NCBI GenBank assembly: GCA_013115145.1
Contig: JAAPAO010000085.1
Coordinates: 1-64,000, forward strand
Length of the DNA: 64,000 nucleotides
Origin: Perkinsus chesapeaki ATCC PRA-425
Taxonomy: Eukaryota > Protista > Perkinsozoa
Reading direction: 5' to 3'
Positions within the stretch are counted from its first letter, which is position 1. Every line of letters begins with the position of its first letter. Below the pieces are notes generated by a model, which did no database searches, was not told where the DNA came from, and saw only the letters and a program-made list of their open reading frames with translations. This document shows, in pieces, positions 11,640 through 54,806 of this stretch. The translations under genes and the position numbers were made by a program.

Positions 11640-12701
11640 CTAACGCCACATGTGTACAAAATAAAGAGACCAATTTGCAGGAGTATTTTCATCGATATTT
11701 CGTATATATGTATGAGCCTTGACTAATCGTATCGTCTTGTACCTTCCGAAACCACGCGGAGCGTCATGTACCTGTTGACTGATGAAATATGCCTTTCCGG
11801 TAGCATCGGATGCACCGAGGCTATCAAACAAATAGTCGTTACTGCCAAGTCAACTAACATTTTCCTCAGTTGGTGGATGGCCCGAAGTACAGTCCCACAA
11901 GACAAAAGCATCTTCATATCCATAACGACAGAAGGAAGAGCCCGCGATTGGATGAAGTTGCCAGGGTACGTTGACCTTTTGTGTTTTAACAGTAAAAGGG
12001 AGCTCGGGTGACCATCTTGTAAGCGCCGTCACTCTAAACGCTCTGTCTGCACTATACATAATCTTTACTATAGTGGGGTCCACAGATGTTGCCGTTAAGT
12101 GATAGACCCGATCATATGGCCTTTTTGGGCAGGTTGACCATATACCTGCGAGTTCATCCAGTCTAGCCAGACTGGTGTGGAAGACTTCAGCGTATTCATG
12201 CCAATCGACAACAAAGAACACCTCATCCTTCATGACAACCATTTTAATTGGCCATACACCAAGCTTACTCAGTAAAGGTATCTTATACACTTCATTAACC
12301 TTGTTACCTTTAACATCATAATCAAGCAAAGACGGACCATCATCATCGTATAAGACATATAAATGAGAGATATCAGCATTATAATAAAAGGTGGCCCTAT
12401 TTTCATTCGTCTTAGCTAAGGTCTCAATGTCACCGAAGGGATGAAGCGTCCTCTTATTAATCGTATCACATTCGACAAAGATACCATAGACCAGGCCACC
12501 TCTTGCGAAGATAAAATCGGGCTCTCTTTCGACATTTAAAACTATCTGTTCCATGGGGCAATTCAAGCTGAGCAGAGGCCGGGGGATGTAGGCAAGTATC
12601 TCAGCCAACAACATAAGTACAGGCTCGAGGGACGAATGCTCATCCCAAAGCTTCTTCACAAATAGACAGCGAAGTGCTTGAGCCTCAGATGGACGAATCA
12701 T
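11640..12701 (-). pseudogene. F-box-like family member (type B) with one in-frame TGA at 11850-11852
   Basis: Starts MIRPSEAQALRCLFVKKLW...LEPVLMLLAEILAYIPRPLLSLNCPMEQIVL. After the TGA the same frame continues LGSNDYLFDSLGASDATGKAYF...IRLVKAHTYI, homologous to the C-termini of 13109-14038 and 53769-54806. Confidence 0.8.
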
Positions 12702-13108: not shown

Positions 13109-14038
13109 TTAGTTATCAATATTTCGTATATAAGTATACGCCTTAACCAATCGTATAGACTCATCTGGCACCCTCGCAGAGCGTGGATCTCTATATCGCC
13201 TTCCTCGAAGAAAATAAACTTTACCGTTGCCATCTGAGGCTGCAAGGCTGTCAAATAAGTCACCAGCACTGTCGAGCTGTCCACAATCTTCTCTTGCTGG
13301 TATATTGTCAGACGTACAGTCTAACAGAATGGAAGTACCTTCATCGCCATACCGGCCAAAATCCGAGCCCACGATTGGATGAAGTTCGGAAAAGCTACGA
13401 CATTTACTCCTCCATGGCTGAGCAACAAAAGGGTACTTGGGCGTCCACCTCTCAAGGGTCGTTGCTGCAAAGCCGTAATTCTTCTGATCCGAATAAAATA
13501 ACCTAACTGCAGGAGTTTCTCTCGGTAACGGCGCAAGATGGAAGACCAGATGACGGCTGCTTATATATATATCACATATTCCAATGAGTTCTTCAGGCGT
13601 GGCCAAGTTGACGTGGAAAACTTCGATTTCTTCATGCCAATCGACAACAAAGAACACCTCATCCTTCATGGCAACCATTTTAATTGGCCATACACCAAGC
13701 TTACTCAGTAAAGGTATCTTATACACTTCATTAACCTTGTTACCTTTAACATCATAATCAAGCAAAGACGGACCATCATCATCGTATAAGGCATATAAAT
13801 GAGAGATATCAGCATTATAATAAAAGGTGGCCCTATTTTCTTTCGTCTTGGCTAATGTCTTGGCTTCCCCTAGGGGATTTAAAGCTCTAAGCTGGATGGC
13901 ATCTGGACAGGCGAAGAGTCCATAAACCACATCTGATGTTGCAAATATATAGTTTGGTTCGATATCAATGTCCAAGATGAACTCCACCATGGGGCAGTTC
14001 AAAGTGAATACTGGAGGTTGATCAGCATCGTGGACCAT
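13109..14038 (-). CDS. F-box-like family member (type B) lacking the family N-terminal cassette, intronless
   Basis: 309 aa ORF. Homology to the paralogs begins only at PPVFTLNCPMVEFIL and ends with the family motif IRLVKAYTYI. Confidence 0.75.
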   Translation of the reverse strand: MVHDADQPPVFTLNCPMVEFILDIDIEPNYIFATSDVVYGLFACPDAIQLRALNPLGEAKTLAKTKENRATFYYNADISHLYALYDDDGPSLLDYDVKGNKVNEVYKIPLLSKLGVWPIKMVAMKDEVFFVVDWHEEIEVFHVNLATPEELIGICDIYISSRHLVFHLAPLPRETPAVRLFYSDQKNYGFAATTLERWTPKYPFVAQPWRSKCRSFSELHPIVGSDFGRYGDEGTSILLDCTSDNIPAREDCGQLDSAGDLFDSLAASDGNGKVYFLRGRRYRDPRSARVPDESIRLVKAYTYIRNIDN

Positions 14039-18533: not shown

Positions 18534-19526
18534 TCAGTTGATATAAGGATAAAAACAAAGCACGCTGTAGCTCGTGTTGGAGAAGCTTGTGGCTCTGGTG
18601 TACTTTGTGCACGACGCTACGAGGTAAAAAGCATCATGGTCAGCGCTAATGCATGAAGTATAGGTCAGACGGCCCGGCAGGCTGCAGTCCTCCGACATTC
18701 TCTTCAGTTGGCTATTAACTATATAACCCTTCGTTCCAGATGTAGCCACGTGTAGCCCTGACCCAGGTAGTAGTTCAGTGTTAGCTGCTATACTGTTTTT
18801 ACGTCTTTCTTCGAATACCATCGGACACGCAGCCCTCGTCATGGCAAGTCTAACAGAAGTGTATTTGCCATCCATTTTATATACGACATCAACCATTAAG
18901 GGGGCCTTGGAGACTGCATGAAAGCCAATTAACTCGGCGGGTTGAGGGGATCGCCATATAACATTAATATCACCACATAGGCTCACGTGGAGAAGATCGA
19001 TGTACTTAGTATAGCTCCTAGATATTATACAATACTCGCTCCCTACAAACACGTGTTTGTCAATTACCAGCATCATGCTTGGCCAGTATGGTCTGGAGAA
19101 CAGATCAGGTAACTTATAGGTTTTGTGAGCCTTACCAGCCTTAACATCATAATCGAGTAGAGTGGGACCGCCACTGTTGTATAAGACGAAGAGATGAGAT
19201 GTATCTCGATCATAGTAGAAGGTTACCGTACAATCATCGGACTCTGCCAGAATTACTTCCTTACCCGGAATGGACCTGGCTTGAAGAGTGATGGCTTTTC
19301 CTTTCACAGAGATGGTATGTAGGACGTTACCTACGGCGAAGGCGAGAGCGGGCTTCTCGGCGAAGAGTATCTCTTCCATAGGGCAATCCAAGGTTAGTGT
19401 AGGTTCAGGAGTGTAGGCCATAATATCACTCATTAACTCTGGTAGTGGACCGATTGACATCGAATCCTTCCAGAGCCTCTCAACCATCATACAACGGAGG
19501 GCTTCAACGTGGGATGGTAGAAGCAT
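18534..19526 (-). CDS. F-box-like family member (type A), intact, intronless, dispersed copy
   Basis: 330 aa, MLLPSHVEALRCMMVERLWKDSMSIGPLPELMSDIMAYTPEPTLTLDCPMEEI..., collinear with 47665-48651. Confidence 0.85.
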   Translation of the reverse strand: MLLPSHVEALRCMMVERLWKDSMSIGPLPELMSDIMAYTPEPTLTLDCPMEEILFAEKPALAFAVGNVLHTISVKGKAITLQARSIPGKEVILAESDDCTVTFYYDRDTSHLFVLYNSGGPTLLDYDVKAGKAHKTYKLPDLFSRPYWPSMMLVIDKHVFVGSEYCIISRSYTKYIDLLHVSLCGDINVIWRSPQPAELIGFHAVSKAPLMVDVVYKMDGKYTSVRLAMTRAACPMVFEERRKNSIAANTELLPGSGLHVATSGTKGYIVNSQLKRMSEDCSLPGRLTYTSCISADHDAFYLVASCTKYTRATSFSNTSYSVLCFYPYIN

Positions 19527-19627
19527 TTAATTGCGTTATCTATTGACCCTCAACTATAGATTCGTTCTCAAAGGCTCTGCACGCATGCGCAAGCTCGTTG
19601 CGGTCAAAAAACGCCCGCGTGCTGCGC

Positions 19628-20222: not shown

Positions 20223-20336
20223 GAAACGAAATATGGCCTTCAAAGGATGGGTTATTAAGTGATGACTGAAAGCAACAACACTTGAGAGGTGCAGTGAAAC
20301 CAACGTGATGATGATGACAATAAATGACGTGGAGCT

Positions 20337-36400: not shown

Positions 36401-39400
36401 GGGTAGGTTAGCATCCTCAAACTACCGCCTGACATGTTGTCTATCAGAATCGTCGTGGTGGATCTGCCATTACCATCAACGCTCCTGGCGTGGACTTTGA
36501 CGGCTCCTGGGGTAGCTGCTATTTTTCCAACTATAATCCCTCGAATTGTCCACTAGGTGCACCAGCAGGCTTTATTGGTGGCCGACAGGGCCGTAGAAGA
36601 CCGGACCTCGGCGGTGACTGGGCATCGACCTCTAGTGTGAGGACAGCTGCTCAATCACCCAATGGTGGTATGAATACCCTTGCTCGTCGTGGTGCGGGAC
36701 TCTCTCCTGCGGCACTAGACTCTCTTAATCTAGGCCTCCAATCCCCTTTACGTAAGCAGTTCTCATGTACAATAGATGAGGATCCTTCTTTATTAGGTAT
36801 CGTCAGTGGTAGAGGTTTCCCATCGTCTGGTACCGGTGGTGGACAGGCTATTGATAGGACTTGGTTACAGAGTCCCCTACAGACTGAGGACATCGCTCAT
36901 ATGTATTTTAAACCACATGCTGCTCCACCCTTTACATTACCTCTTCAGGTACAGCAATGGTAGCTGCTCATCCCTGGTGCCTGCTGGAGCTCGCTCAACC
37001 AGTGGTCAAGGGCTAGCTGATGGAGCACAGAACCTACTGAGGTTGCTCTTTATGAGGTCAGGCTTGTCATTACTATCATTTAACATAACTCCATTATAGA
37101 TACCAACCGTTACGTCCTTTGGTGGATAAGACTATCTTCAATGTGTGTCTAGAGCCTAAGCTAGAGGATGCTGTCCTGCAAGCGTTGGTACAGGCATTAC
37201 TGTCTTTAGCATGTGATGATAGGCTTATTGTACTTATCACATCTACTCCATTGTTATAGGTTCGAGTAATCGTCGACATGGTCACAGCGTCCATGGATGG
37301 TCATTTGTTGTTGAGGGTGGTGATGGATCTATCGGAAAGTCTACAACTGGAGCATCATCTAATGATGATGAGAATGAGACCTTCCCTCCATGGTATCTCT
37401 ATGAGCCTCCAATGCCATCACCACCCACTGCGAGATCAGCTGGTACCACCAGTCCTGATCCAAATGTAACCTGCTCGATTGTTGTAATAACTTTACCATC
37501 TTAGCTTACCTTAGGCACCAGCTGCATCATCAGCTGTAACAGCCTCCCCAACGGTTAGAGCATTGGCTAGATCAGTTGGCTGTGGCAGAGTCTTGAATGC
37601 TATAAGCTTTTTGGTCTCTACTATACCCAGAACACGGCAATGGTTTGCCTCGCCGAGCATGTAGCCCAATCATTTAACGCCAGCCATAACCTTCATCCAG
37701 GACAAACAACGCTCTACTGCAGAGGACATCCTCAACGACCATTTCAAAGACAGTCAGCAGTCCCTCTCCTAAGCGTGCTTCAACATCTGGTGTTAAACGG
37801 CGTAGAAGTAAGAAGCTGATAACGAGGTGTGCTTTCTATACTTCATCACCCCCTTTTAGGTTCTATAACTACAATGGAGCCTTCTGATGCCACTGAGGTT
37901 CGTAGATCACGTCGACTTCTTTCTCGTACAGAGTCAGCAACTGACCCTTCTGAGGGAAGCGGCTCAGCAAGGAAACTCCAGCGAACCAAGTCCGTTGGAG
38001 GAAAGGAAGCCGGTAAATCGACAATGGTGACTTCTGGTGAGGCTGAGATGGGCTCTGCTCCCTCGGCAAACCATTCACAGCAGAAAGCCAACAGATCATC
38101 TCAACCGATTCTAGTGGCTCCAGTGAATGTTGTGGTAGGAAGACTGAAAGAGATGGATGATGGTACCTGTATTGTTTAATTCAGGTTCAGCTTTTGGGAT
38201 CACCATTATTACGGTCATCACCAGCCCACACATTATTCCTTGTCACTGTGCTTGTATCGATGCTAACACTACCAACTCATACAGGGAAGGCTAATACGCA
38301 TCATGCGGCCAACCATAATGCCACCGCGGCTCTTCCTGCTCCTCCTCCACCACCACCGCCTCCAGCTAGTACAGCTGCGCAGCATCCAACACCTACTTCT
38401 ACAGCGACTGCTTCTGCTGCTGCAGCAGCTGAGGTGCCCAAGCCAGCAACAGCTGCTAGTAGTCCCAAGAAGGCTGCTAAGACAACTAATGATATAATAC
38501 GCATGTAGCCAGTCTTCAACTAGAGCTCCTCCTACCTTTATTCCTCCTAGGCACGTCCGTCATCTACAGAGAGCTGTGTCGGGCAGCTCTGTGAGCGCCT
38601 TGTGTGCATTCTTGGCAAATGATAACCCCATTAGTGGATGCCAGGTCAACAGTACAGAGCTTGATAAGGCATTAGCCAAGACGAGTAGGCCGCTGCCGCC
38701 GCCTCATTGTAGCCACTCCACCATCGTTCGTCTTTGTTAGGCTCACTCATTCAAGCATTGGCTAGCACTGGTGACCGTCATAAGATGGTTATACGAAAAC
38801 AGCTGCTTATTCACGTCCGACAGCTATCCAGCAAAGTATCCAGTATGTTAATGGACTTGGCAGAAGGCCGAACATCACCAGAGGAGCACACTGAACAACA
38901 GCCATCAACGGCAATCAATGACACTTCTAGTGGAATATTGCTGATGACGTCCAAGAGGCTTCTCCGTGTTGTACAATGCTGGAGCGATGCGTACGGCTTC
39001 AAGCCTCATGTGTTATTGGACTTCGCCACCTTTCAGTCTCCTTCCGAAGGGCAGCACTCTCACCCCTGAGGCAGAGGAGGCAGCTGAGAAGGAATTTGAT
39101 GAGTTCTTAGTTGAAGCTCATGTTGAGGACCTCTGGCCAGGATTGGACAAGGCTCTGACCAAGTAGCCCCCTCCACTTTATGGTCTGTAGCAGCTTTATT
39201 ATTAGTAGATACGACAATGACCCGAAGGTGCTCGAGTCTCAGCTTGCATCGGTGTCAAGAGCTCAAGCAGCATTACAGGCAAGGAGGGAGAATGAAGAGA
39301 GGCATCGTCAACAGCAACAACAATATGCAAGAACAAGCAGTACACGGAATCCAATATCACCACACCACGATTCGTTGGATAGAGTAGAAAGGCCAGAGAG

Positions 39401-41606
39401 GGCCCAACCATCTCAGCAGCAGCAAGAGCAAGGCAGCGGCGGTAGGCTGTACCCTTCACTACCATTTAGTATTATCATTCAGGTGCTGCTCCCGGCCAAA
39501 GGCCCACCAACAGGCATTTGCCTTCGGGTTTGACATCCCTACTACCGGTCATTGAGCTCTACCTCATAGCGATGTTACCGACTAAGTCTGATAGACTCAA
39601 GGTTGCATCAGCACGTCGGGGAATGGTAAAAGTTCTAGAGGCGTCAATATCGGAATATTCATCTTTTTCAGGCGAACAATAACGGTGCTACTTCTCCAAG
39701 GGCAGGGGGCCTTCCAAAGACACCTTCAGCGTCTAGTAAGGCCGAGCCCTCTACTGCAGCTCGACCAGAAGATCACGACCCGAGGCACCAGGAGCTCTCA
39801 CGTCAAGGTGAGTGCTCACTGATGTCACGTGTCTGGTCATCTGCGTGTTATTAGCACGTGCTGTGGCAAGCTTTTGTGAGTCCCATAGAAGGCCTTTGAA
39901 TGCTCTCATCAAGAACCAGCCATCACACCTTCTACGAGCCCTTAACCCAATAGTGTATGCTGCTCCTCAAGTAAGGTAAACAATTAAGCCCGATGGAATA
40001 GTCTTTATGTAGGCGCTCGACTTTGATAATAAGCGTCAGTTCTTCCGATCAAAGCTGAAAGAACAATCACGAAGAGCTGGTCACATGTGAGCATTGATCC
40101 AAGCAGCTCTTAACCATATTCCTCCTGGCAGGTCTGGCCCACCGATACGTCTCCATGTCCGACGACACGAGGTGTTTGTTGATAGCTATCATCAGCTGCA
40201 GCATAGAAAGAAGAGTGAGATGATGAATAAGATCATCGTAGGCGTATCCTCAAAAAGCCTGACTCATCTTCATTGCTTTTGGATAGGTTCAATTCGTTGG
40301 AGAGGAGGGTGTCGATGCTGGTGGGTTAGTTCGAGAATGGTTTGGTATACTAGCAAGGGAGATCTTCAATCCCAACTATGCACTCTTCTTACCAGCTAAT
40401 GGAAGGCCTAGTACATTCCTTATCAATCCAGCTTCGTACGGATACAACAGTGTGTCGGGCCATTCCCAGAGTCTTTCAGGAGTGTTAACCCCGACCATCT
40501 GTCATTCTTCCGATTCTGCGGCCGTATTATTGGAAAGGCTATCTACGAGAATCAGCGCCTGGATTGCTACTTCGTTCGAAGTATAGAGCATGTCATTGAT
40601 GTTATCCTTATACCTTCGTTCAGGCTTCTATAAGCATATGCTGGGACGACCTGTTACTTGGCATGATATGGAGGCGATGGATCCGGACTACTATAGGAAC
40701 CTCAAATGGATTCTCGAGGTAACCTCAGAAGTTAGTGCTAGATAATGATTGAGTATTCTCAGTGCCAAGATGATGAGATGTTGAAGGCATTAGATCTGAC
40801 CTTCACTATTGAGGAGAGTGACTTTGGCAAGACTAATGTTGTCGAGCTGGTAAGCCAACATTATATGAGACTACATCGTGTTAATGAACCTCTTAGATAC
40901 CAAACGGCAGCAACACGCCTGTTACGCAACAGAACAAGCATGAGTATGTCCAGAAGGTTTGTGAGCATAAGATGACTTCGGGTATTCAAGATCAGCTCAA
41001 TGCCTTCCTTGAGGGCTTCCATGAGCTGGTAAGCATCATCATCATAATCACCGTTATGATGTGTATTATTATTCAGATACCAGCTGATCTTGTTGGTACA
41101 TTGTTTGATGATAAGGAATTAGAGCTGCTTATTGCTGGTCTTCCTACTATAGATGTGGAAGATCTCAAACGCAATACTGAATACGTAAACTATAGCAGCC
41201 AAGACCCTCAAATCAAATGGTTCTGGAGTGAGTTGCTCGTGTTTGCCGCTGCACTGTTATCGCTCGTCTCAGAATGCCTCGAGGAGGATTTCACTGAAGA
41301 TGAAATGGCTTGGTTCTTGCAGTTTGTAACGGGCTCAACTCAGGTAAGACCTACGCTTAGACTTGTTCAAATCTCTGTGAATGATTACCACCACAGGTGC
41401 CTCTAGAAGGGTTCCAAGCTCTTACTGGCATGCGAGGGCCTCAAAAGTTTAGCATCCATAAGGCGCCTGGCGATAAGACACGGCTGCCGAGTGCACACAC
41501 TTGCTTTAACCAGCTTGATTTACCTGACTATGATACTGAAGAAGTTCTGAAGACGAAGCTTAAACAAGCTGTCTGTGAGGCACATGAAGGATTTGGATTT
41601 GTATAA
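24482..41606 (+). CDS. Giant HECT E3 ubiquitin ligase, HUWE1/Tom1/UPL1-like, many introns
   Basis: Helical N-terminal region, long Asp/Glu tract, UBM-like repeats ([19 protein letters not shown]; [15 protein letters not shown]) and a C-terminal HECT domain ([23 protein letters not shown]...[43 protein letters not shown]...EAHEGFGFV stop) with the catalytic Cys. Confidence 0.92.
32900..34165 (+). repeat. GAT/GAG-rich low-complexity tract encoding the acidic region of the HECT ligase
   Basis: Dense (GAT)n/(GAG)n runs; plus-frame translations are poly-D/E. Long antisense ORFs here are artefacts of the repeat. Confidence 0.85.
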
Positions 41607-42043: not shown

Positions 42044-42606
42044 ATGCTTCTCCCATCCCACGTCGAGGCCCTCGGTTGTATGATGGTTGAGAGGCTCTGG
42101 AAGGATTCGATGTCAATCGGTCCACTACCAGAGTTAATGAGTGATATTATGGCCTTTACTCCTAAACCTACGCTAACCTTGGATTGCCCTATGGAAAATT
42201 GTTCCTAGAAACCGACTACTACAGTATATCCATATATATATATACTATTGTCGTAGGAAACCTTGTATGATGTTCCACGTTCTATGTGGCGTATATATGA
42301 TGAGGTAATCATTTGTTCGTTGGTATCCAACGGACGCGAGCTGAGGTTCAAGGCTCATTTAAAGTTATCTACATGAATACTGAGTTTGATGAGAACCCGA
42401 GAGTAATCTGGTCTACCTATGATGCAGCTGCTGTACTAGCTTATCTCTCTGTGGTATCCGTTAATCCTGTGGTGACGATATTGTGTGTGAAGCACGACGA
42501 AGCTTGTGGTATCATACGGTCTGATGGGAAAGAGGCGCTCGTCGAGCGCATGCGTCAACCTTATGTCACGGTGTACATGCGTACGATAATCGGGGGGAGC
42601 TGCTGA
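42044..42606 (+). pseudogene. F-box-like family pseudogene (type A): 5' cassette with ATG preserved, then frameshift and internal deletion
   Basis: 42044-42200 is near-identical to the 5' cassette of 47665. The frame breaks just after CPME. 42313-42480 (FVGIQ...FKVIYMN...RVIWSTY) aligns to the middle of 51496-52002. Confidence 0.8.
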
Positions 42607-42723
42607 AGGCGGTTGAGACTTTTACTGGAGGTCTAAGAGTTTCAGGCTCGTTACTGCAGGGAGTCTGAGTGTCTCATTGATTTCGTCCCGCCCTCCACTC
42701 CCTCACAATTGTTTGAAAGAGAG

Positions 42724-42789
42724 GTCAAGATGGTTGTCGCTCGTCTCCGCTGGGACTCACTCTGTCAAGATGGTTGTCGCTCGTCTCCG
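42724..42789 (+). repeat. 26-bp exact direct repeat GTCAAGATGGTTGTCGCTCGTCTCCG, two copies with a 40-bp period
   Basis: Copies at 42724-42749 and 42764-42789. Confidence 0.9.
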
Positions 42790-43454
42790 TTGCTCACCGC
42801 CCAACGTAGTTTGAGACGGACATGGGCTGAACCATCAAGGAGTGTATCCTCTACCAACTTGGTAGTACCAAGACCTCCACCCCGCATACGGCCAGATTAG
42901 TTCTAGATAGGTCTTCTCCTATAGTGGAGTTTACGTCCAAACCGTCATCAACTGGAGTGCGTCCCAGTATCCGCGAAACTAGAGCTGGTTAAGCTATCGA
43001 CGACAGTCGTTTGAAGGGGATGTCTCAGGTGCTCAATCTACCTGGAAAACACCTGTTGGGAGGTACTACAGGTAAGTCCGGTGGAATGTTCTCGTTAAGC
43101 GTAAGATAGATGTTACAAGTAGTCAGAGGCTTGTTCGTGACCTTCCATATCTGAACTGAGATCAATCTCTATGCACCATTACAACCAAACATAATTTGCA
43201 TTAACCAGTAGCATTGTGTTGGAGTATATCGTCACTCATTCTCCAGCGTATTAGACGCTGAATTGAGCTCTCGTTGTTCAATATGGTTACGCTTGTGCCA
43301 CTGTTATCGAGGACATTCTATTTGCGAGGTATTCACTCCCTGTACTGTGGGGGATTCCTCGATATCAAGCCATACGATATGTTGTAGCTCTTCAGGAATT
43401 ATTCATCGATCTTACCGTTGCTCTTGGTGGATGGCGCCTTTGCGTCACATCGAC

Positions 43455-43493
43455 TTGGGCGCGCGCGGGTAGGGCCCCGTATGCGCGCCCCAA
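43455..43493. other. GC-rich hairpin
   Basis: GGGCGCGC (43457-43464) pairs with GCGCGCCC (43483-43490). An inner stem GCGGG/CCCGT closes a short loop. Confidence 0.7.
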
Positions 43494-43711
43494 AAAACCA
43501 CGGAGTAACCTCACTGCAAAAATGTAGGACTGCGGAGCCGATTTCGCGATCTACCCAACACGTAATTGCAATACTATCTTGACACAGCTTTGTGTATACC
43601 ATTTGCACACTACTGCAAGCCATCACATATCCTATCTTGTTTTGTTAACTCAATTATTCGTATCCTCTGCACGTAATCATTTCAGTTATTTGTTGTTGTT
43701 GTTGACAAAAA

Positions 43712-45818
43712 ATGCCAGTCCTGGGCAAAGACAGCACCGTTATGCAGGAGGTTTTAGAGCTGAAGACTATCAGCTATCACGATTTGCCTGATGACATGTC
43801 GGAAACCAGTGCAGCGACCATGGACGCCAAATTAATCGTCAGGTTGCTGAACTGTAAGGCGCCCGAAAAAGCGGTCAGGTAAGAATCACTTGTAGAAACT
43901 ACTGCCACGCATTCGTCTGTTAGGTTCAATAAGTTCGGTGGTGCGCAAGGTACCAATCCGAACAAGAAGGTTATGGTGGAGCAGTGTTACCATCGTTGGG
44001 TGCTCTGCTACGATATTCTGACCGGCGAACCTGTAATAACGTATAGTGTTGGGTAGTAGTAATTTGATATCTTCAGGTGGTCGTTATCACCCACGATGCG
44101 AAGGAGAGCCACCAGCTCTTGACATTCGTCGGTGACCTCTACCCAGGGGCGACAGCAGCTTTGGTCGAACCAGAGACAGTTGGTGTCTTGGATAACGGCC
44201 TAAAGTTGCTGTCGTCCCCTGATAGGTTGGTACCTATCAAGGTTGAAGAGGTCACGACGGAGATTCCAAGTGGGATAGAACATTTTACTCGATATCGAGT
44301 ATATAATCTCCACTTGGAGAGTCTTGAGCTGGTGAGGGCCACAATCCTCAACGATATCTGTCCTGGTATACTTTGTGACGCCCAAAGTGCACCAGGAGGA
44401 AAACGTTGTGGATGTGTGTCAAACAGTGGGAAGAGTGATCGATGGGCAATCCAGCTTGGCTTTACTACACCAAGTCTGAACCATCCCATTGCGATTGTCT
44501 CCCACCGTCTGACTGCCCTTTTCGTGGATGAAAAAGCATCTGAGGTAAAATGACTTCGTTCTTCCGATTATTTCATCATTTTCTTGTAGGGTATTTGTCG
44601 TTGGAGTGCACGGCAGCTACGGCCGACAATTAAGCAAGTATTAACCTATATTTGCAATCATGGCGGATTCGTAGCAACGGCTTGGGTGGAACCCGGGAGG
44701 CAGGCTGCAGTTGGTGATGAGGTTGATGCCATCACAGAGTCTAAACTTCACGTTTGCTCTCTGCGGCCTTCCAATCCCGAGGTTATTAACGTCACCAAGG
44801 ATATGAGGTAAGATATTCCACATTTTGTAATAGTATCTTCTTATTCACAGGATGAAGCTGGTTGTCCAAGATCCTAACAACCTCAACATCCAAGCCGCCC
44901 AAATCCAAGGACCACAACGACAAGGAACACAACCGGTAGGCTTTGGTATAACATGAGTTTTTCGTCACGCCCCATAATGCTTCCGACACTACTGCGTATG
45001 TTTTTAGGTTAATGTACCGCCTTTACCACCACAACAGCAAAAACCAGTTCCACCACCGCCACAACTGGTTTTACCACAACAACAACCACAACCGGTACAA
45101 CAACAACCACAACCCGTACAACAACAACAACAAAAACAACCACCACAACCACAACAACCAGTTCTGCCACCACAGCAACCAAATCCACCACCACAACAAC
45201 CAGTTCTGCTACCACAACCGCTACAACAACCACTGCCTCAACAACAACAACAACAACAACAAGCACTACCCCAACAGCAGCCACAACTTCAACATGATCA
45301 GCTACTACAATTATTACAACAACAAATGCTGCAAATTCAACAATTACAACAACAACTGGTACAGCAGCAACAACAAATGGCAGAGCAGCAACAACAACTG
45401 GCAGGGCAGCAACAACCTCAACCACCACAGCAACCACAACCACCACAAGAACAACAGGAGGAGCAGCGGCAACCACAACTACCGCATCATCAACAAGAGC
45501 AGCAACCTCAAGGGGAGAAGGTGGAAAAACAGCAAGAGATTCAAGAACCACAACAGAAGCAACAGCAGCAACACAGACAGAATGTTAGTAGGCAAGGAGG
45601 CGATCAAGGTGGACTTGTGGGCTCTGTAATGCGAACGATAATACGAGTTGGTGCTTATATTATTTCAGATATTCTGCCATCAAGAACCACCAGCGGTGCG
45701 TCGCCTCGCTGCTGAGGCCGCTGCTGCTCGTGCTGCTGCTGCCGATTCAGGACCAGCGAATGAAAATGCTGACCCTGCAGCTGCTGCGGAAGTAGAAAAC
45801 GAGAGTGACGACGAATGA
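43712..45818 (+). CDS. Hypothetical multi-exon protein: beta-rich domain with a CxGxxCD...CGC motif plus a long Gln/Pro-rich tail
   Basis: GT-AG splicing joins MPVLGKDSTV..., ...CYHRWVLCYDILTGEP, VVVITHDAKESHQLL...DICPGILCDAQSAPGGKRCGCVS..., ...LTYICNHGGFVATAWVEPGR...LHVCSLRPS, MKLVVQDPNN..., the Q/P tract and ...ENESDDE stop. Confidence 0.7.
45010..45570 (+). repeat. CAA/CCA/CAG-rich imperfect trinucleotide tract (poly-Gln/Pro coding)
   Basis: Visible (CAA)n runs; the spliced frame reads VNVPPLPPQQQKPV...QQQQ. Confidence 0.9.
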
Positions 45819-46208
45819 AAGACACTTATCAAGTCTTTCATAATTATAAGGCTTTAACCTATTCTCAACGTAAGTGAATTATTCCTAATAAATAGTAAAA
45901 CCTTTTTCGCAGATACCTAAATAGTAATCATCCCTTTACGCCGTAATGACGGAGATTTAGCTTTTAGATTCAAGTGATATGACTATTCCATGTGATCAAC
46001 TACTCCGCATGAAGTCCCTGTTGGGCGCGTCGTGTTTTTACTTCATTAGCGTTGTGTTTAGTAGCACTAAATTAGTTTATTAGTACAGTATTGTTTTTCC
46101 CTCAGTAGCGCTCATCTTTATTCGCCCTATGACATCCTTCCCCTTCAACTTTGCCGCATACCAAGGTTCAGATCTGAACTTCAAATCGAGGTATTTCAAA
46201 CAATCCAG

Positions 46209-46739
46209 ATGAGTCTGAGGCTGGAGGTCTTCTATATTAATTTAAATGATCCAAACCTTGACCTTGTCTCGATCTGGTCCTCTGAAGCCTCTGACGTTGG
46301 GGAGATCGTACCCGGTCGCTTCACCGTTATCTCTCATGAACCGCTCGATGCGAGGCTACATTATGATCATTCCACGAGAGGATATATTATGACTTCATTT
46401 ACTAAGTCTCAGTATTTGCCTGGTTTCACTTCGCATACTATAACAGTAAGTACACACTCGAGCGATTGGATCCACTTTCCAATAGCTGGCTCGACGTTCT
46501 GCCGCTATGGGGACTTTGGAAACTTCGTTCTGTGGGATTATAAAACTGCAAGTACACCACCAGTGATTTACGACTGTCAAGCAGACGCTCAGCAAGACAG
46601 GTCACTCTTTGCTTGCCCGGCAGCGTTCGACGGCACTGGGAAGATTTATTACGTTATCTCGCATAAAATTGAGGGAGTTTCTGACATGTACAAGTCGATA
46701 CGGTTAGTTCGGGCATTTATTCATCTGCCCTTGAAGTAG
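46209..46739 (+). pseudogene. F-box-like family (type B) C-terminal half only
   Basis: LEVFYINL...IWS...FPIAGSTFCRYGDFGNFVLWDYK...LFACPAAFDGTGKIYYV...SIRLVRAFIHL aligns with the C-half of 53769-54806. No N-terminal cassette is found upstream. Confidence 0.75.
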
Positions 46740-47664
46740 ATACATAGCAGTTAGTTTAATAAGTGAGTCTTAGTTTCTCTCATGTTATTGTCTTGGTTTT
46801 TGTGTTAAGTGTGGATCCACAAAATACTCTACAAAATACACTGTTTTAAATAGAGTGTAACCTCTGCCACTCCTAGTTCAAATCTGCATCGGCACTGAAG
46901 TTCTGAAAAGAGGGTTCACGAATCCAGCAAGGCCCGTGGGTTATCGAGCTCATCTGAGCATTCCTGTTTGTGATACTCACATCCCATAGTGGGTCGAATT
47001 TCCTGAAGATATTCAAAGTAAGGGTTTTTTATGTGTTTTCCGCTAACTCTCCTCAACTTCATCTGATCGTCACCACATTTAGCGCGGCGTTACGAAGGTA
47101 TCGATCGCTAACCCTCATCAACAACGCAATTTCCAGTATGCAACTACATGAGGGCAAACGTACACGGCTTATATACAGTGCAGCAAGCCCCACTGGTGCA
47201 GGTAGCTGAGATGTCACGAATTCTGACCTCTACCCCAGAGCGCCATCAAGTCCGCTGTTCGGTCACGCACGTGTGTGCTCATTTCGTTGCGTCACGGGGG
47301 CGGCAAAACACTACGAGGGCTCGTATCGCACCGGCTCCACCGTATCATTAGGCCTTAACAAGTGACCGGCAAATTCGCTCGCCTTTTTTTACTTTGAGGG
47401 GATGCCACCTCATGACCTGCCCCTTTCCATACCGCTGAAGGGTTTCCAGACGGGGTTCCGGCAGGATTGTATAGATACATCTGAGTTAAACCTTTCAGTG
47501 ACCGTTTCCGTAACAGAGCATCGTCGGCAGGAAGTTTCGATGAGTTAGCGTGATAGTATCTCCCTTTTAGAGACTCGAGGCTACATCCTACACTAATCAT
47601 CATGGCATAATGTAGATGCGCAATATTACCTTATCCATTGTCATAGTTACCAGTCTCGATTCTA

Positions 47665-48651
47665 ATGCTTCTACCATCCCATGTCGAGGCCCTCCGTTGT
47701 ATGATGGTTGAGAGGCTCTGGAAGGATTCGATGTCAATCGGTCCACTACCAGAGTTAATGGTTGATATTATGGCCTTTACTCCTAAACCTACACTAACCT
47801 TGGATTGCCCTATGGAAGAGATAGTTCTTAATATTGACAGGAAGCCTGACTTCATCTTCAACACGGGTAACGTCATATATGGCGTCTTTAAGAATGAAAA
47901 GTCCATACTTCTCCAAAGTATATCCCCTCCTGGTGAGGAGGCAACTCTAGCAGAGACACTAAACTGGAGAGGCACCTTCTACTATGATCCAGGCACGTCT
48001 CGTCTCTTCGTTCTACACGACAGAGGCGGCCCCTCACTCCTTGATTATGATGTTACTTCTGGCATGGCTCACAAAACCACAAGGTTGTCTGCTGTCCCAT
48101 CTACCCCTCATTGGCCAGATGAACTGCTCGTTATTGGCGGGCACGTTTTCTTAGTAAGAAAGTGGAGTAAGGCGCAGTCCGGAACCTTTCATGTGGAAGT
48201 ACTACATGTCGATCCGAGTGGGCATGTGCATGTCGCATGGCGAGCTCCACGACAAGCACAACTGACCAGCCTTCACTCGGTGGCCGAGGCTCCTTTGACA
48301 GTTAATATCATGTATAGAACGGGTGACACCTATCACTCTATTAGAATTGTTATGATAAGAGATGCATCCCCTACGGTATTCGAGTCGAGGCATCAAAACA
48401 ATATCTCTGCAGACCTTCTGCTACCCGGGCCAAACATTCATGTAATCACCTCTGGAACAAGCCGTTTCCTCGTCGATGATATGTTGAATAGATTATCGAA
48501 GGACTTTACCCTGCTAGAGGGTTTAACCTATATTGATTCGTTCCGTAGTAATGGTGTTTTCTATTTCCTTGTACTACGCGAAGAGTACGGGTATGAACAT
48601 TCCCCTACTACTGTTTATAGGTTACTCTGTCTTTACCCTTCCTTCCGCTAA
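47665..48651 (+). CDS. F-box-like family member (type A), intact, intronless
   Basis: 328 aa with the conserved cassette, TFYYDPGTSRLFVLHD..GPSLLDYDV and terminal YRLLCLYP. Confidence 0.85.
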   Translation: MLLPSHVEALRCMMVERLWKDSMSIGPLPELMVDIMAFTPKPTLTLDCPMEEIVLNIDRKPDFIFNTGNVIYGVFKNEKSILLQSISPPGEEATLAETLNWRGTFYYDPGTSRLFVLHDRGGPSLLDYDVTSGMAHKTTRLSAVPSTPHWPDELLVIGGHVFLVRKWSKAQSGTFHVEVLHVDPSGHVHVAWRAPRQAQLTSLHSVAEAPLTVNIMYRTGDTYHSIRIVMIRDASPTVFESRHQNNISADLLLPGPNIHVITSGTSRFLVDDMLNRLSKDFTLLEGLTYIDSFRSNGVFYFLVLREEYGYEHSPTTVYRLLCLYPSFR

Positions 48652-49720
48652 TCGCATATTTGGAATGATATATTTCATAGGACGCCAACCTACCCATAAC
48701 AACCTATCTAGCCAATTCTAGTTGGACGGATTTTTCTTATTGCTTTTCCGTATTATTGACCCCATTGCCAGAGCGAAGTGAACATGCATTCCTTGACGGA
48801 ACTGGATTGTCGCTTTTTTGCTTTTGGAAACACACTTCCATTTCACTTGCGCTCAATACTGCAACTGAGGATCAATCTATTAGCTGCGCACATACAAAAG
48901 CTGCTTGACCATATATCTAAGATTTAATATCTTGATGATTTTTCATCTTTTTTTATCGATGAAGACCTTGTTGGGTTAGTCATGACACTTTGAAGTATAC
49001 ACCTTCGGTTAGGATATTGTAGGACACAGCCCCTAGCTCATCCCCAACTCGAGGAGCCGAAATGATGCCCATCGTGTAAGAGCAAATCTGGGAAGCTTGA
49101 AAGGATATCTATATACGAGTCAGACTCCTTGGAGACTTGCAGGCGCCATGGTCCGAATAGTTTCTCAGAGCTTCATTTCGGGGAAAATGCAGCGCAGTAT
49201 TCAATGTGAGCTTATAATGTTGGTCAACTACGGGGTGTATTCGAGAGCCCCTGGTAGAGGTCGAGTGCGTTGCCAAACCATAACGCTAGAACATCACAAT
49301 CCTAACAATAAGCCAAGCATGTATGAAGACATCCACTCTACGACGTTGCGAAGTAGATAACTTCAACTGCTAGCTGAAGGCAAAGGTGGTTCAATATTGT
49401 GAAAATTCGGTTAATCCGATTCACATGCGCCTTCGCAAGCCGCAAACGCTCTTTCACCGCCTAATATAGAGGGGATTTTAATGACTCGTCCCTGGCTTTA
49501 CCGTGACGTTGGTCAATCAATTAGTGTACTGATGTATCGAGTCGGCATGACAACACCGCGATGCACGTTTACTAGACTTGGACTTGTAGACTCCTCCGCG
49601 TTACGGATCGCTCTACCTAGTCGTTTACCAGGCATGCTATTGCTGCGCTATAGTTTATGATACCGTATCATTGGTACGTTCTTTGTCTGCGAGCGACTTT
49701 CAGTGTATCTTCATTATCTA

Positions 49721-50786
49721 GTGCTTCTTCTATCCCACGTCGAAGCCCTCCGTTGTATGATGGTTGAGAGGCTCTGGAAGGAGTGAATGCCTGTCGGTCC
49801 ACTACCAGAGTTGATGAGCGATATTATGGCCTACACTCCTAGACCTACACTGACCTTGGATTGCCCTATGGAAGAGATAGTTCTCAGTATCGAGAAGGAG
49901 CCCCATATGATTTTTCCTGTTGATGGTGAGGTCTACGGCTTGTATATCGAAGAAGACAGGATTCTTTGCAATAGGCTTTACCCGCGCAGAATTAAAGAGA
50001 ACTACGTGGCACAACTATCACGAAAGGGTTTCGCATGGTGGGCTTCTGTTTGTTCTACATGATGTAGACGAACACGAGAATGTCGTTATTTTAACTGATT
50101 ATGATCTCAAAACTGGGACGATCAAGAGACATGAAATGGGCCAACTGATGGACGTGTTTCACTCGGCTATGAAGATGGAAGCCACCGGTTACCATTTAGT
50201 CATTGGCACCAGTTGGGCAGAACCTGGGAAGCTCGATTCAGTTGAGGTTATCTATACAAATATAAACTCTGATGAGGCCACAGTAATCTGGTCTTCCTAT
50301 GACGAGGGCACTAAATTGGATAATCTCTCTGTGGCATCTACTCATCCCTTGGCAGTCGACATTGTGTACTCCACCAACGACTCCAGCAGTCATTCGACGA
50401 CAGTTGTTCTAGAGAGGTCGGCTCCTATAGTACAGTTCAAGCCCAAGTCTTCCCCAATTCGGTTATGGGCGACTATCCGCAAAACCCGGGCGGGTTACGC
50501 AATCCTTGATAAGCGTTTGAAGAGGGTATCACCGGTACTCAACTTACCCGGAAATCCCCATGGGACCCTCTGTGCCACTGACAAGTGTAGTGGAATGTAC
50601 TTCCTCATTAAGCGTAGCACTAAGGGTACAATTAGTCATAGGCTAGTTCGGGCCTTTCCTTACTTGAACTTAGTGTTTTATTCCCTACATAGTCTCGTCA
50701 CCAGACTGAACTTTTCAAGACTCACAGACCTGTGTTCTATTTTACCCTTGGCGCTTCTCTGGCGGATTGCGAGCTATCCTTGTTGA
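49721..50786 (+). pseudogene. F-box-like family pseudogene (type A)
   Basis: Start mutated to GTG (49721), in-frame TGA at 49784-49786 and a frameshift near 49985 between ORFs 49787-50062 and 49920-50786. The family terminal motif HRLVRAFPY is present. Confidence 0.8.
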
Positions 50787-51049
50787 TTCACTGTGACATC
50801 ATTAGTTGAAATGCGCCAAGACGTTTTCATATAAGGAATCGAACTCTAGCCGGGTTTCAGTTACTTCATGTGATGCTCTTCAGAGAACTGTCGCTCATTT
50901 ACAGCAGTTCACTAAGAACTCAATATTACACGAGATGTTTCGGCAAATTCATCTTTGAGAGTCGTACTTACGTATACTCTACTTTTGCTAGTCGTCGAAC
51001 TATGCAAGTACATTATAGCCTCTCACATAGCGCAACTTCCCACTCTGTA

Positions 51050-52002
51050 ATGCTTCTCCCATCCCATGTTGAAGCCCTCCGCTGTATGATGGTTGAGAGG
51101 CTCTGGAAAGATTCGATATCAATCGGTCCACTACCAGAGTTAATGGTTGATATTATGGCCTACACTCCTAAACCTACACTAACCCTGGATTGTCCTATGG
51201 AAGAGATAGTCATTAATATCGACAAGGAGCCAGCTTATATCTTTACCGAAGGCGGCGTAGTCTATGGCGTACGTAATCAAGATAACTGTTTTTCCTGCGA
51301 GAAGCTTTATCCTTTCGGTGGCAGCATCACCCTCGCCCGGACTTCCTCAGGAAGGGGCCAATTCTACTTCGATTCGGTGACTGGTCACTTGTTCATCCTT
51401 CATGATGATAATGGTGTCACTCTCCTGACTACGATATAAAAGCCGGTGTACCTAGGACTTACAAGTTATTACAATTACCGAAGTTATGGGATTCGGTGAA
51501 ATGTATGGTAGCGACAGGTTCTGACATTTTCGTTGGTATGCAGTGGTCTGAACAAGGGCAACCTCCCTCTATCGAAGTCATCCACGCAAACCTTAACGAT
51601 GAAAAGGTCTCTAGAGTAGCTTGGTCTTCATATCGTAAAGGTGCCCAATTGGTTGCCCTTCATATAGCCTCTGGAAAGCCCATAGCATTTGATATTATCT
51701 ACGCTATAGCTAAGCGCAAGCACTCCAGTAGGGTTGTTCTCGAGATGTCTGCTACTCTATTAGGATTCACCACCATCAATACTGCAGTAGGAGTAAGTGC
51801 TATTGTTCGCAAGAGTGGAACGGGTTACGTTCTTCGCGATAGTCTCTATAGGAGAATGTCCGAGCAGTTCAACCTACCTGGCGAGCCAAGTTGCAGCCTG
51901 TGTTCAACAGACAAGTCTGGTGGAATCTACTTTGCCGTTACACGAAGCAGAAACGGTGTAGTTAGCCATAGGCTTGTTCGTGCTTTTCCTTACTTTCACT
52001 AG
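51050..52002 (+). pseudogene. F-box-like family member (type A) with a 1-nt deletion near 51425
   Basis: GVTLL then DYDIKAG is restored by adding one base in CTCCTGAC. ORFs 50870-51439 and 51496-52002 differ by one frame. Ends HRLVRAFPYFH. Confidence 0.8.
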
Positions 52003-52526
52003 GTAGTTATCACTTACATACGTGATAACCGTTCTCAGCTCGATATATTTCATCATTGGCAGCAGGATTGTGTTAAATACATTGACTGACTTTGTCCGTT
52101 TGTATTCGGCGGTGAAGGCGGGGTGACCCCTCGTCTCGTGCCAAATACCTCATAGAGGCACCCACTGTGAGTTGAAAGGCCTTGTGAACCAGATACCTCC
52201 CGAAAGGTGGTTCAATACTATGGTAATTCACATACAACCTCGCAAACTGTGGATCATGAGATTTCAGTACCTCTTTTTCACCATTCTGGATTGTTGCGCA
52301 TAATCATCCATCGCTTTACCCTGTCTAATCAATCAGCAGTATATTCTAGTATTGAATGAGCGAGCGACATGAATCACGGTGGGCCCTCACTAAAACCGAG
52401 TTTTCATTGTTGATTATCGCGAACTAAACGCAGCAATAAGTAGTTCAACAGGCGCGCTATTATTGTGTTGCAGTTGATGTTGCATTGCTCACCTGCGAAT
52501 GGATTTCAGTGCACCTTCATTCTCTA

Positions 52527-53513
52527 ATGCTTTTTCCATCCCACGTCGAGGCCCTCCGTTGTATGATGGTTGAGAGGCTCTGGAAGGAGTCGGTGCGTAC
52601 TGGTCCACTACCAGAGTTAATGGTTGATATTATGGCCTTCACTCCTAAACCTACACTAACCTTGGATTGCCCTATGGAAGAGACTATACTAGATATCAAA
52701 AACGAGCCTGACTATATCTTGGTTAGGAAAGACGTCGTTTATGGTATATTTAAGTATACTTCTTCTGTCATGATTGAACAGTTATACCCTGCTGGTATGA
52801 GAAGCGAAATAATATGTAAACCTTCAACTTCCCTGCCCGACTACATCTACTACTATTGCCCCCAGTCTGCTCATCTTTTCCTACTCTCCTGTCACGGCTT
52901 TCTCATCGACTTCGATATTGATGCTACCAAGGTCCACGCAACGTTTGAGATTCAGCAGCTGTGTTCTGGTGGAATGTCGCCGAAGCATATGGTTGTCATA
53001 GGGGACAATCTCTTTGTTGTGGTGTTTGGATCTACAGGAGCCGAAGTTCGGTACACGAGACTGTCCGATCCTATGCGGGTCATAGTCGCACATTCCTTAC
53101 CCTCGGTTGATGACAGTTCTGAGATTTTGTCACTGAACCCAATTTCTGCTAGTCCCTTAGAAGTGTCCGTTTGGTTGAATACGCGTGGGGACATATTTGT
53201 CTGTATCCTGAGGATGATTCGCCAGGAATCTCCTATATTGTTCGCGGAGATGGGGTTCTCGAGTCATCCTGGAACAGGAACTCTCCCTAAGACTGCGTTG
53301 GTCGCCGGATCGGGTGTTCACCGTATCCCTGGTAAAGATGGCGGATACTGTTTGAGGAATAATAAAGGGAAGCTGCTGTTTCGGAGCCCTGATAAGACTA
53401 ATCCCCCGGTACTCGAACACCGTGCAGCATCTGACGGTGCTGGAGATATATATTTTCTGTCCAACAAAGGCGATTGCTACAGGCTTCTCAGAGCATCACC
53501 TTACCTTCGCTAA
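52527..53513 (+). CDS. F-box-like family member (type A), intact, intronless
   Basis: MLFPSHVEALRCMMVERLWKESVRTGPLPELMVDIMAFTPKPTLTLDCPMEET..., ends YRLLRASPYLR. Confidence 0.85.
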   Translation: MLFPSHVEALRCMMVERLWKESVRTGPLPELMVDIMAFTPKPTLTLDCPMEETILDIKNEPDYILVRKDVVYGIFKYTSSVMIEQLYPAGMRSEIICKPSTSLPDYIYYYCPQSAHLFLLSCHGFLIDFDIDATKVHATFEIQQLCSGGMSPKHMVVIGDNLFVVVFGSTGAEVRYTRLSDPMRVIVAHSLPSVDDSSEILSLNPISASPLEVSVWLNTRGDIFVCILRMIRQESPILFAEMGFSSHPGTGTLPKTALVAGSGVHRIPGKDGGYCLRNNKGKLLFRSPDKTNPPVLEHRAASDGAGDIYFLSNKGDCYRLLRASPYLR

Positions 53514-53768
53514 TACCGGCCTATCAAAAAGGGGGGACTGGCTGCTGGCCGTGATATGACTCGTCTGTTCGCTTTCACTAATTTCACATTTCGAAACTTT
53601 TCTGTTGAGTTATGCAGAATTATTCTCCAACGAGAGTAGTTTTCACGTACCATTTGCCACGAATGGGCACGAATGGTCACGAGTTTTGCTCCATATACTC
53701 CGTTTCTTTTGCCGCAAGATGCTAGAGGAAACAGGATACTTGTGTGCGACTTTTCACAGTGTTTCACA

Positions 53769-54806
53769 ATGATCCATCCATCCGAGGTTCAAGCTCTCCG
53801 CTGTCAGATGATGACGAAGCTCTGGAATAAATATTCCTCCCTCGAACCAATGCTGGTGTTGTTGGGTGAGATCCTCGCGTACGTCCCTCCACATGTACTC
53901 ACCTTAAACTGCCCCATGGAGGAGATAGTTCTAGGTATCGAGAGGGAACCTGAATTTATCTTTGTCTATGCTGACATTGTCTATGGTATATTTGTTGGAA
54001 AGGACACCATAAACCTTAGAATCATACATCCTTGGCAGAAGGACGTGAAACTTGCCAAGTCGGTAGCTGGAACAGCTCAATTCTACTACGACCTCAGCAC
54101 TTGCCACCTCTTTGTACTACACGATGATGGTACTTATCCCTGCGGTGGTGCCTCTCTGTTGGATTATGATGTAAAGGCTGGTGTTATTCATAAGAGTTAC
54201 AGACTTCCGGGTCTGTATTTCTTCTCAGCGTCGAGTTCGATTAAGCTGGCTGTATTAGGTGGACATCTCTTCATCCTTGTGAGTTGGTTCAAACACTTAG
54301 AGCTTTTCCATCGCCATTTGGACTCCTCCCAAGATCTTGCTCTAATCTGGTCAACATATGACGTTATTCAGGAGTCATTCAACTACCACTTGACCGTCGT
54401 CTCTCACACGCCGATCATACTGAGAGTCCACTACGAGACGATAGAGGGCTTCGTGATGACTACACTCCAACGATCGCTTCTATCGTTTGCTTACACACCA
54501 AAGACGGTAGTAGTCCTCCCCGAGGACTCATATCCCTTCAATCCGATTCAGGGTTCTACATTTTGCCGTTACGGTAGCGATGATAGTTTTAAACTCTGGG
54601 ATTGCAAGGTTAGAAGTCGACCACCAGAGGACGACGAAGGTGAAGATGGGCTCGAATACCATGGGTTACTATTTGATTGTCCCGCAGCGACCGACGGCTC
54701 GGGCAAGATATATTATGTCTTCGGAAAGCGTGTTGAAGTAGACAACAATGTCTATAAGCAATCAACTAGGTTAATTCGTGCTTATACATATTTAAAGAAC
54801 GAGTAA
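53769..54806 (+). CDS. F-box-like family member (type B), intact, intronless
   Basis: MIHPSEVQALRCQMMTKLWNKYSSLEPMLVLLGEILAYVPPHVLTLNCPMEEIVL..., ends TRLIRAYTYLKNE. Confidence 0.85.
   Translation: MIHPSEVQALRCQMMTKLWNKYSSLEPMLVLLGEILAYVPPHVLTLNCPMEEIVLGIEREPEFIFVYADIVYGIFVGKDTINLRIIHPWQKDVKLAKSVAGTAQFYYDLSTCHLFVLHDDGTYPCGGASLLDYDVKAGVIHKSYRLPGLYFFSASSSIKLAVLGGHLFILVSWFKHLELFHRHLDSSQDLALIWSTYDVIQESFNYHLTVVSHTPIILRVHYETIEGFVMTTLQRSLLSFAYTPKTVVVLPEDSYPFNPIQGSTFCRYGSDDSFKLWDCKVRSRPPEDDEGEDGLEYHGLLFDCPAATDGSGKIYYVFGKRVEVDNNVYKQSTRLIRAYTYLKNE

Follow-up and report, generated by a model that had tools for sequence, protein, structure and literature searches.

Segmental concerted evolution, caused by partial gene conversion, is known in many multigene families. 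Lineage-specific tandem expansions are found in the F-box families of plants and nematodes, and the DDB1-CUL4 receptors DDB2 and CSA carry an N-terminal helix-loop-helix before a seven-bladed WD40 propeller. Perkinsus species, which are intracellular parasites of bivalves and major pathogens of oysters and clams, stand at the base of the dinoflagellate/apicomplexan radiation, and to our knowledge their lineage-specific gene families are almost entirely uncharacterised. Here we describe a family from a stretch of 64,000 nt of the clam parasite Perkinsus chesapeaki (contig JAAPAO010000085.1), referred to below as the window; all coordinates of copies are window positions. This multigene family, so far seen in Perkinsus alone, is annotated only as hypothetical proteins and arranged in tandem arrays, and each protein is predicted to consist of an N-terminal helix-loop-helix, a linker with the motif LDCPxEE and a six-bladed beta-propeller. 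In the copies that we call type A, the first 159 nt (53 codons, the cassette) are homogenised in two Perkinsus species by segmental concerted evolution through short-tract gene conversion.

The six type A copies of the window were anchored at the ATG and the mean of the pairwise identities was calculated along the gene. Mean identity was 90% (85.5-95%) for nt 1-159, whereas it fell to 26% for the 159 nt before the ATG and, on the other side, to 39% for nt 160-180 and 32% for nt 181-339; the upstream cliff is as sharp as the downstream one, and the likeness reaches only about 7-10 nt before the ATG. This agrees with the initial annotation, made from the sequence alone, which had described the first 159 nt as near-identical and had counted 8 of 159 nt different between the copy at 47665 and an inverted copy 28 kb away (hereafter 19526, after its first nucleotide); the recount gave the same number. 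The initial annotation had also stated that synonymous sites in the cassette are conserved, and this was confirmed by the synonymous divergence (dS, Nei-Gojobori method), which for pairs of type A genes was 0.13-0.42 when the cassettes were compared but ranged from 1.4 to saturation for the remainder of these genes (1.4 for the propellers of 19526 and 47665). Equal dS in the cassette and the C-terminus, which had been proposed as the observation that would speak against the idea, was thus not seen, the value for the cassette being far lower. The ratio of nonsynonymous to synonymous divergence (dN/dS) of the cassette was about 0.1-0.45 for comparisons inside a species and about 0.2 for those between species, indicating purifying selection.

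The same pattern was observed in Perkinsus olseni, where two tandem arrays, L001 and L004, hold seven or more copies with a species-specific cassette of their own. The P. olseni cassettes are 2-14 of 159 nt apart from one another, their identity starts at the ATG and stops at the CPMEE codons, and for the same pairs of genes a cassette dS of 0.03-0.19 contrasts with a propeller dS of 1.3 to saturated. The cassettes of P. olseni and P. chesapeaki are distinguished by a set of substitutions common to all paralogs of each species. One P. olseni copy, P0014, is unconverted and has a cassette dS of 1.3-1.7 relative to its own paralogs. The two arrays, which derive from two P. olseni assemblies, share some near-identical genes (L001:7538 and L004:5741, dS 0.005) but elsewhere differ in order and content, with a dS of about 0.44 between nearest counterparts, and copy content therefore varies between isolates or haplotypes. 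At L001:13307 and L001:15137 there are cassette-bearing remnants with indels or a lost continuation, so that pseudogenes with recognisable cassettes exist in P. olseni too.

Trees of the two parts of the gene gave different groupings. In the propeller tree the species are interleaved: 52527 pairs with P. olseni P0014 (branch support 98/98), 47665 and 19526 are sister to the main P. olseni clade, and P0011 and P0017 fall in a different deep clade despite having the main P. olseni cassette. The tree of cassette DNA has a clade with the type A cassettes of P. chesapeaki (96/93) and a second one with the main P. olseni cassettes (94/97), and the cassette of P0014 falls outside both. In approximately unbiased (AU) tests, where the groups tested on one partition had been defined from the other partition, the propeller pair 52527 and P0014 was rejected on cassette data (p = 0.022) and both cassette groups were rejected on propeller data (p = 0.0017 and 0.0019). 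Congruent N- and C-terminal trees had been named beforehand as evidence against exchange, and by these tests the trees are incongruent.

Additional evidence was obtained from damaged copies and from the distribution of sites. The pseudogenes at 42044 and 49721 have cassettes that are 85-93% identical and a decayed remainder; given that these copies keep good cassettes, selection on their own product cannot account for the cassette likeness. Four-gamete violations were seen at 30 of the 55 informative site pairs of the cassette. Two neighbouring type B copies share a mid-gene tract (see Table 1) of about 180-200 bp with 98-100% identity, the longest exact run being 119 nt, in flanks of 30-70% identity, and this shows that conversion of such tract size is active elsewhere in the gene. 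No clear signature of GC-biased conversion was found, GC content at third codon positions being 0.49/0.62 in the cassette and 0.45/0.56 in the propeller. Low dS in one segment, incongruent trees, mosaic sites and independent tracts are thus all present, as expected for gene conversion, and the earlier suggestion that paralogs exchange sequence up to a boundary at the CPMEE codons holds, given the contrast in dS and the incongruence of the trees. What is odd in this family is the cassette, and not the tail. Purifying selection on the protein alone, with no exchange, would be in line with the dN/dS of the cassette given above, but in any given pair the propeller exceeds the cassette in synonymous divergence by a factor of 5 to more than 10, and neither the incongruent cassette and propeller trees nor the good cassettes retained by pseudogenes nor the four-gamete violations inside the cassette can be reconciled with it; its probability appears close to nil.

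A tblastn search of the window with family members recovered exactly the ten copies of the initial annotation and no other. The cassette was also found by an independent repeat search, as five direct copies and five inverted pairs with 19368-19527, the repeat arms being 154-163 nt long with 91-95% identity. The number and places of the copies were therefore as described, but the damage had been overlooked: no more than four copies are intact; a fifth, with its reading frame whole, is missing the first half of the cassette, and the other five are fragments or broken (Table 1). The cassette of the pseudogene at 42044 is 86-93% identical to those of the other type A copies, the nearest being 47665 (11/159 nt different), and that of the degenerate copy at 49721 has 15-23 differences from other copies; the NCBI model FOL47_010689 corresponds to the latter copy, begins at an internal ATG and includes an intron. 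The intact type B copy at 53769 differs from type A in 55-66 of 159 nt of the cassette. The region 11.6-22 kb of the window is syntenic with P. olseni array L001 via a gene for ribosomal L20 and an SNF2-like protein, and the sub-array at 11.6-19.5 kb has three copies where the syntenic P. olseni array has at least seven. The L20/SNF2-like gene has 69% DNA identity to its P. olseni counterpart (L001:328-2563), with synonymous sites saturated (proportion of synonymous differences 0.79 over 262 sites). The family is under birth-and-death turnover.

Table 1. Family copies, their parts and neighbouring features in the window (aa, amino acids; ORF, open reading frame; AF2, AlphaFold2; pLDDT, predicted local distance difference test).
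Feature	Position	Strand	Description
Intact type A gene	47665..48651	+	328 aa; ORF
Cassette of 47665	47665-47823	+	53 codons; predicted helix 4-21, helix 28-38, linker with LDCPMEE
Propeller of 47665	about codon 51 to end	+	Predicted six-bladed; AF2 model pLDDT 82, propeller matches
Intact type A gene	18534..19526	-	330 aa; inverted, 28 kb from 47665; adjoins L20/SNF2-like gene
Intact type A gene	52527..53513	+	328 aa; propeller orthologous to P. olseni P0014 (98/98), cassette of P. chesapeaki clade
Intact type B gene	53769..54806	+	345 aa from homologous ATG; without LPEL
Pseudogene with type A cassette	42044..43234	+	Cassette 42044-42196 open; deleted and frame-shifted remnants at 42304-42471, 42864-43106 and 43088-43234
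5'-truncated type B fragment	46179..46739	+	C-terminal blades only
Degenerate type A copy	49721..50786	+	GTG for ATG, in-frame TGA at codon 22, frame change near 50.0 kb
Type A copy, broken	51050..52002	+	Frame change near 51427; cassette intact
Type B copy, broken	11640..12701	-	In-frame stop at 11850-11852
Type B copy	13109..14038	-	First cassette half lost; ORF begins just ahead of LNCPM motif; stop codons upstream
Mid-gene conversion tract	12139..12438	-	Pairs with 13575-13874
Aspartyl protease gene	1594-2691	-	Apparent signal peptide
Aspartyl protease gene	7855-8947	-	Apparent signal peptide; two overlapping ORFs
L20/SNF2-like gene	19682-21864	-	
HECT ubiquitin ligase gene	25500-41406	+	DUF913 and HECT domain matches
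ORF in array	44077-44553		158 aa
Low-complexity stretch	45009-45715		Gln/Pro/Asn/His-rich

The C-terminal part was modelled by AF2 on a 16-sequence alignment (pLDDT 82, predicted template modelling score 0.77). Residues 51-320 of the full model contain about 24 strands (pLDDT 80-95), as six blades of four strands in a closed ring, and the predicted fold is thus a six-bladed beta-propeller. In structural alignments (VIA), Z scores of 13-16 over 240-265 residues were obtained, mostly with six-bladed propellers and with no standout, the best matches being C45G9.5, PfCyRPA, Neu2, NHL and Drp35, with the Sec12 propeller also matched; the beta-propeller that had been suspected at the C-terminus is thereby supported. 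Foldseek searches of the full model against the Atlas and AFDB clusters gave lactonase/SMP-30/NHL-like propellers. No more specific relationship was obtained with the full model in the PDB, AFDB clusters or the Atlas, where only generic propellers were found and Fbw7 was one of hundreds of equal and hence uninformative matches. Preceding the propeller are two predicted helices (4-21 and 28-38) and a poorly defined linker (39-48). Given that the first strand spans residues 51-57 and the cassette ends at codon 53, the cassette corresponds to one structural module plus linker.

The C-terminus had been called hypervariable and the family a diversifying repertoire, and neither description fits the substitution data well. 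For moderately diverged P. olseni pairs (dS 0.4-0.5) the propeller dN/dS was 0.40-0.43 and for the youngest pair it was 0.59; when sites were divided by predicted structure, pairwise dN/dS was 0.30-0.32 in strands and 0.47-0.62 in loops. No pairwise dN/dS above 1 was found in the propellers, giving no sign of positive selection in these comparisons. With dN/dS of 0.3-0.6 and saturated dS, the divergence is old and reflects relaxed constraint without gene-wide diversifying selection, so that hypervariability was an overstatement and a diversifying repertoire is not indicated by these ratios.

The initial annotation had likened the cassette to an F-box. If so, the proteins would be substrate receptors of Skp1-cullin-F-box (SCF) ligases with a degenerate but true F-box, and LPEL..DI..Y/F would be the candidate site of Skp1 binding. 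Residues 28-48 follow the first two thirds of what we take to be the Pfam F-box consensus (LP, acidic residue, hydrophobic pairs, I, aromatic residue, L.L.C), and a short N-terminal module followed by a propeller, in a family with lineage-specific tandem expansion, fits the F-box families of plants and nematodes mentioned above. Type A and the main P. olseni group carry LPEL..DI..[YF], but type B (EPML) and other subfamilies (EPMH) lack the LP; a looser pattern, P-x3-L-hydrophobic-x-[DE]-I-hydrophobic-x-[YF], recurs in many subfamilies. In a feature search of the ESM Atlas with residues 1-56, F-box families made up about one quarter of the 100 nearest clusters, and the named Atlas neighbours of the divergent member P0045 were mostly F-box and F-box/Kelch families, although the F-box neighbours scored 0.66-0.74, and the calibration of the tool treats anything below 0.9 as no more than a lead. 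Pfam scans gave no match to the F-box models PF00646 and PF12937, either for 34 N-termini (cut-off E<=10) or for 40 full-length members (cut-off E<=1), and assigned no family to the window copies, the 34 N-termini, the 40 full-length members or 10 long relatives. PF03478, the KIB1-4 propeller of plant F-box proteins, was matched by 1 of the 40 members only (E = 0.028), most likely by chance. Profile searches of the PDB with three alignments returned no F-box chain and noise only, including a designed coiled coil, and the N-terminal module alone had no match in the PDB with Foldseek. Modelled alone, the module shows two helices (4-21 and 27/28-38) followed by linker and strand; only one helix lies after LPEL, and a strand is placed where helix 3 with its conserved Trp should stand. 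At the low confidence of the predicted helices the module may still fold on a partner. The language-model lead is the only positive search result, the F-box assignment is not supported by these searches, and we regard a degenerate true F-box as unlikely.

Considering all the data, we find it probable that this is an orphan propeller family in which the type A module is homogenised by conversion, the module acting as a docking handle and the propeller as a binding surface. Ectopic conversion with tracts of about 160-200 bp keeps the 53-codon type A module nearly identical within a species, acting across at least 28 kb and in either orientation, and the propellers retain a deep lineage divergence that in some cases predates the split between P. 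chesapeaki and P. olseni. The tract ends, at the ATG and CPMEE, would be set by similarity: this stretch alone would be alike enough for heteroduplex formation, the flanks presumably being too diverged, and the cassette itself would stay similar because purifying selection on the protein holds it. Less certain is the proposal that the constant module would serve as a docking handle common to the family and the propeller as a variable binding surface. By analogy, this could be an adaptor logic as in the substrate receptors of cullin-RING ubiquitin ligases, and the handle may be a degenerate F-box, a helix-loop-helix of the DDB1 type or something new.

Several observations weigh against parts of this explanation. 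Type B cassettes are not homogenised, with dS of about 1-1.6 between type A and type B cassettes and 40 of 159 nt different (dS 1.13) between the type B cassettes at 53769 and 12701, so that homogenisation is a property of type A and not of the whole family. In the protein alignment of one subfamily (P0045/46/49/50/53/55/61/65) the best-conserved block extends from TLDCPREE through blades 1-2 and the helices vary, which means that a constant N-terminal handle does not apply throughout the superfamily. The predicted N-terminal helices have low confidence (pLDDT 72 when the module is modelled by itself, 50-60 within the full model), and the adaptor function is proposed from the architecture. Two small runs of RNA reads carrying the species label (5 million letters each) contained none of the sampled words of the region, and none of their reads was placed on 47600-53550. 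Finally, the consensus cassettes of the two species use the same codon at 25 of 35 degenerate codons that specify the same residue (71%). The corresponding value for the neighbouring SNF2-like/L20 orthologs is 147 of 330 (45%), and the excess in the cassette was significant, on a test of only 35 codons (Fisher's Exact Test, p = 0.004).

Slower synonymous change between species would not be expected from conversion within each of them, and this excess is therefore not explained by conversion alone; it could hint at an extra nucleotide-level constraint on the cassette. A nucleotide-level function of the first 159 nt, as a family-wide cis-regulatory DNA or RNA element or a small-RNA target serving co-regulation or exclusive expression, might then operate instead of conversion or besides it. 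Such a function would be compatible with the codon excess relative to saturated neighbours, with exact runs of 16-23 nt common to the cassettes of both species and with the onset of identity, which in all copies of the two species lies about 10 nt or less from the ATG. Synonymous change nevertheless accumulates: dS was 0.47-1.13 for single cassettes across species, and the values for P0014 and for type B given above exceed 1. The predicted RNA fold of the cassette was no more stable than that of shuffled sequences (z = +0.49), no match was found in Rfam and no alternative reading frame is open in all copies of the cassette. Moreover, constraint alone cannot give species-specific cassettes on propellers older than the species split, and the small number of codons limits the test itself. 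We therefore give a nucleotide-level function a small chance. Slightly smaller is the chance that the 159-nt cassette is a nucleotide-level 'family handle', conserved at synonymous sites across Perkinsus species and used for co-regulation (for example through small RNAs or chromatin), for paralog choice, or for recombination that activates or replaces propeller bodies; if this were true, perkinsids would have a type of repertoire-management system as yet undescribed for them. The between-species excess is in any case a small hint of a second functional layer.

The range of the family was examined by protein and profile searches. A protein search with the 47665 copy found Perkinsus proteins only, all named hypothetical, and a profile search of 1.84 billion representatives found 70 proteins at 50% identity clustering, 49 of them at E<=1e-10. 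Members are present in P. chesapeaki, P. olseni and P. marinus, and every member checked by name was from Perkinsus. Several subfamilies share the pattern P-x-H-x-x-A-L ... LDCPxEE. No description of the propeller family was found in the literature on Perkinsus and F-box or on the P. chesapeaki genome. Long relatives that carry HAD, BT1, Myb or RNase H domains have the first blades in every case and are most plausibly fused gene models or insertions, not products of cassette shuffling.

This organisation bears on the idea that the proteins are host-delivered effectors resembling the oomycete Crinklers, with a fixed junction at TL(D/N)CPM joining a header to interchangeable C-termini. A conserved header with a sharp junction is indeed present, LDCPxEE stands at the edge of the conserved block in the P0045 subfamily as in type A, which makes two subfamilies with the motif at a block boundary, and the intracellular life of Perkinsus in bivalves would suit such a role. 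However, all the C-termini are homologous six-bladed propellers, the relatives with additional domains include the first blades and are probably fused models or insertions, the exchange homogenises the header and does not reassort tails, and conversion tracts also occur elsewhere in the gene. Neither a signal peptide nor a hydrophobic N-terminus is present: charged residues are located at positions 8, 11, 16, 17, 20 and 21 and there is no hydrophobic core, in accordance with the earlier statement that host delivery is not supported. Crinkler-like delivery and tail exchange are accordingly very improbable. The Crinkler precedent is a loose one: header and junction are alike, but unrelated tails and tail shuffling are not found here, as the propellers are homologous and exchange is homogenising.

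The remaining features of the window were as follows. A very large HECT ubiquitin ligase gene resembling HUWE1-type ligases ends about 600 bp before the first family copy of the downstream array; this linkage was absent at the P. olseni loci retrieved. Two aspartyl protease genes in the window are paralogous, that at 1594-2691 matching Pfam Asp (E = 2e-14) and that at 7855-8947 having a frame change or an intron, as indicated by its two overlapping ORFs. Within the array there is an ORF without family resemblance, followed by a low-complexity stretch that is open in several frames. Upstream of every family ATG in both species (window, L001 and L004) a YAG is located at a distance of 10-30 nt, often preceded by a pyrimidine-rich run; judged from its position, the YAG could be a spliced-leader acceptor giving very short 5' untranslated regions.

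When the family is compared with known systems, the F-box and propeller proteins (FBXW, F-box/Kelch and plant F-box/KIB1-type) resemble it in having a short N-terminal helical module followed by a propeller. Further likenesses are that those proteins are cytosolic and form large tandem families with fast turnover, a conserved module and a diverging binding domain, and that there is a local LPEL..DI..Y/F resemblance together with a weak language-model neighbourhood. The Perkinsus family differs in having no match to an F-box hidden Markov model or, by sequence, to an F-box chain in the PDB, two predicted helices instead of three, and an LP that is not conserved across subfamilies. DDB2 and CSA have the same order, a helix-loop-helix directly before the propeller, but their propeller is a seven-bladed WD40 propeller, while that of the Perkinsus family is predicted to be six-bladed and non-WD40; no sequence match to DDB2 or CSA was obtained and they were not among the best structural matches of the AF2 model. 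If the module were a ligase-docking handle, the parasite would have an expanded set of substrate receptors that form a new class, and a constant handle, if real, would offer a single bait for finding the partner.

The Crinklers share with the family a conserved header, a sharp junction, diverse remainders and membership of a multigene family in a parasite. They are secreted and have unrelated C-terminal domains attached at a recombination motif, whereas the Perkinsus family is without signal peptide, has homologous propellers and shows homogenising conversion. Families with segmental concerted evolution share the single segment of low dS, species-specific variants on older bodies, incongruent trees, mosaics and tracts of a few hundred bp. 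Compared with these, the Perkinsus family, which is large (at least 70 clusters at 50% identity), differs in that the boundaries at the ATG and the motif are the same in all type A copies of two species, that the tract corresponds to exactly one predicted structural module, and that synonymous conservation across species is higher than expected, and it provides an unusually clean natural case of conversion limited to one structural module.

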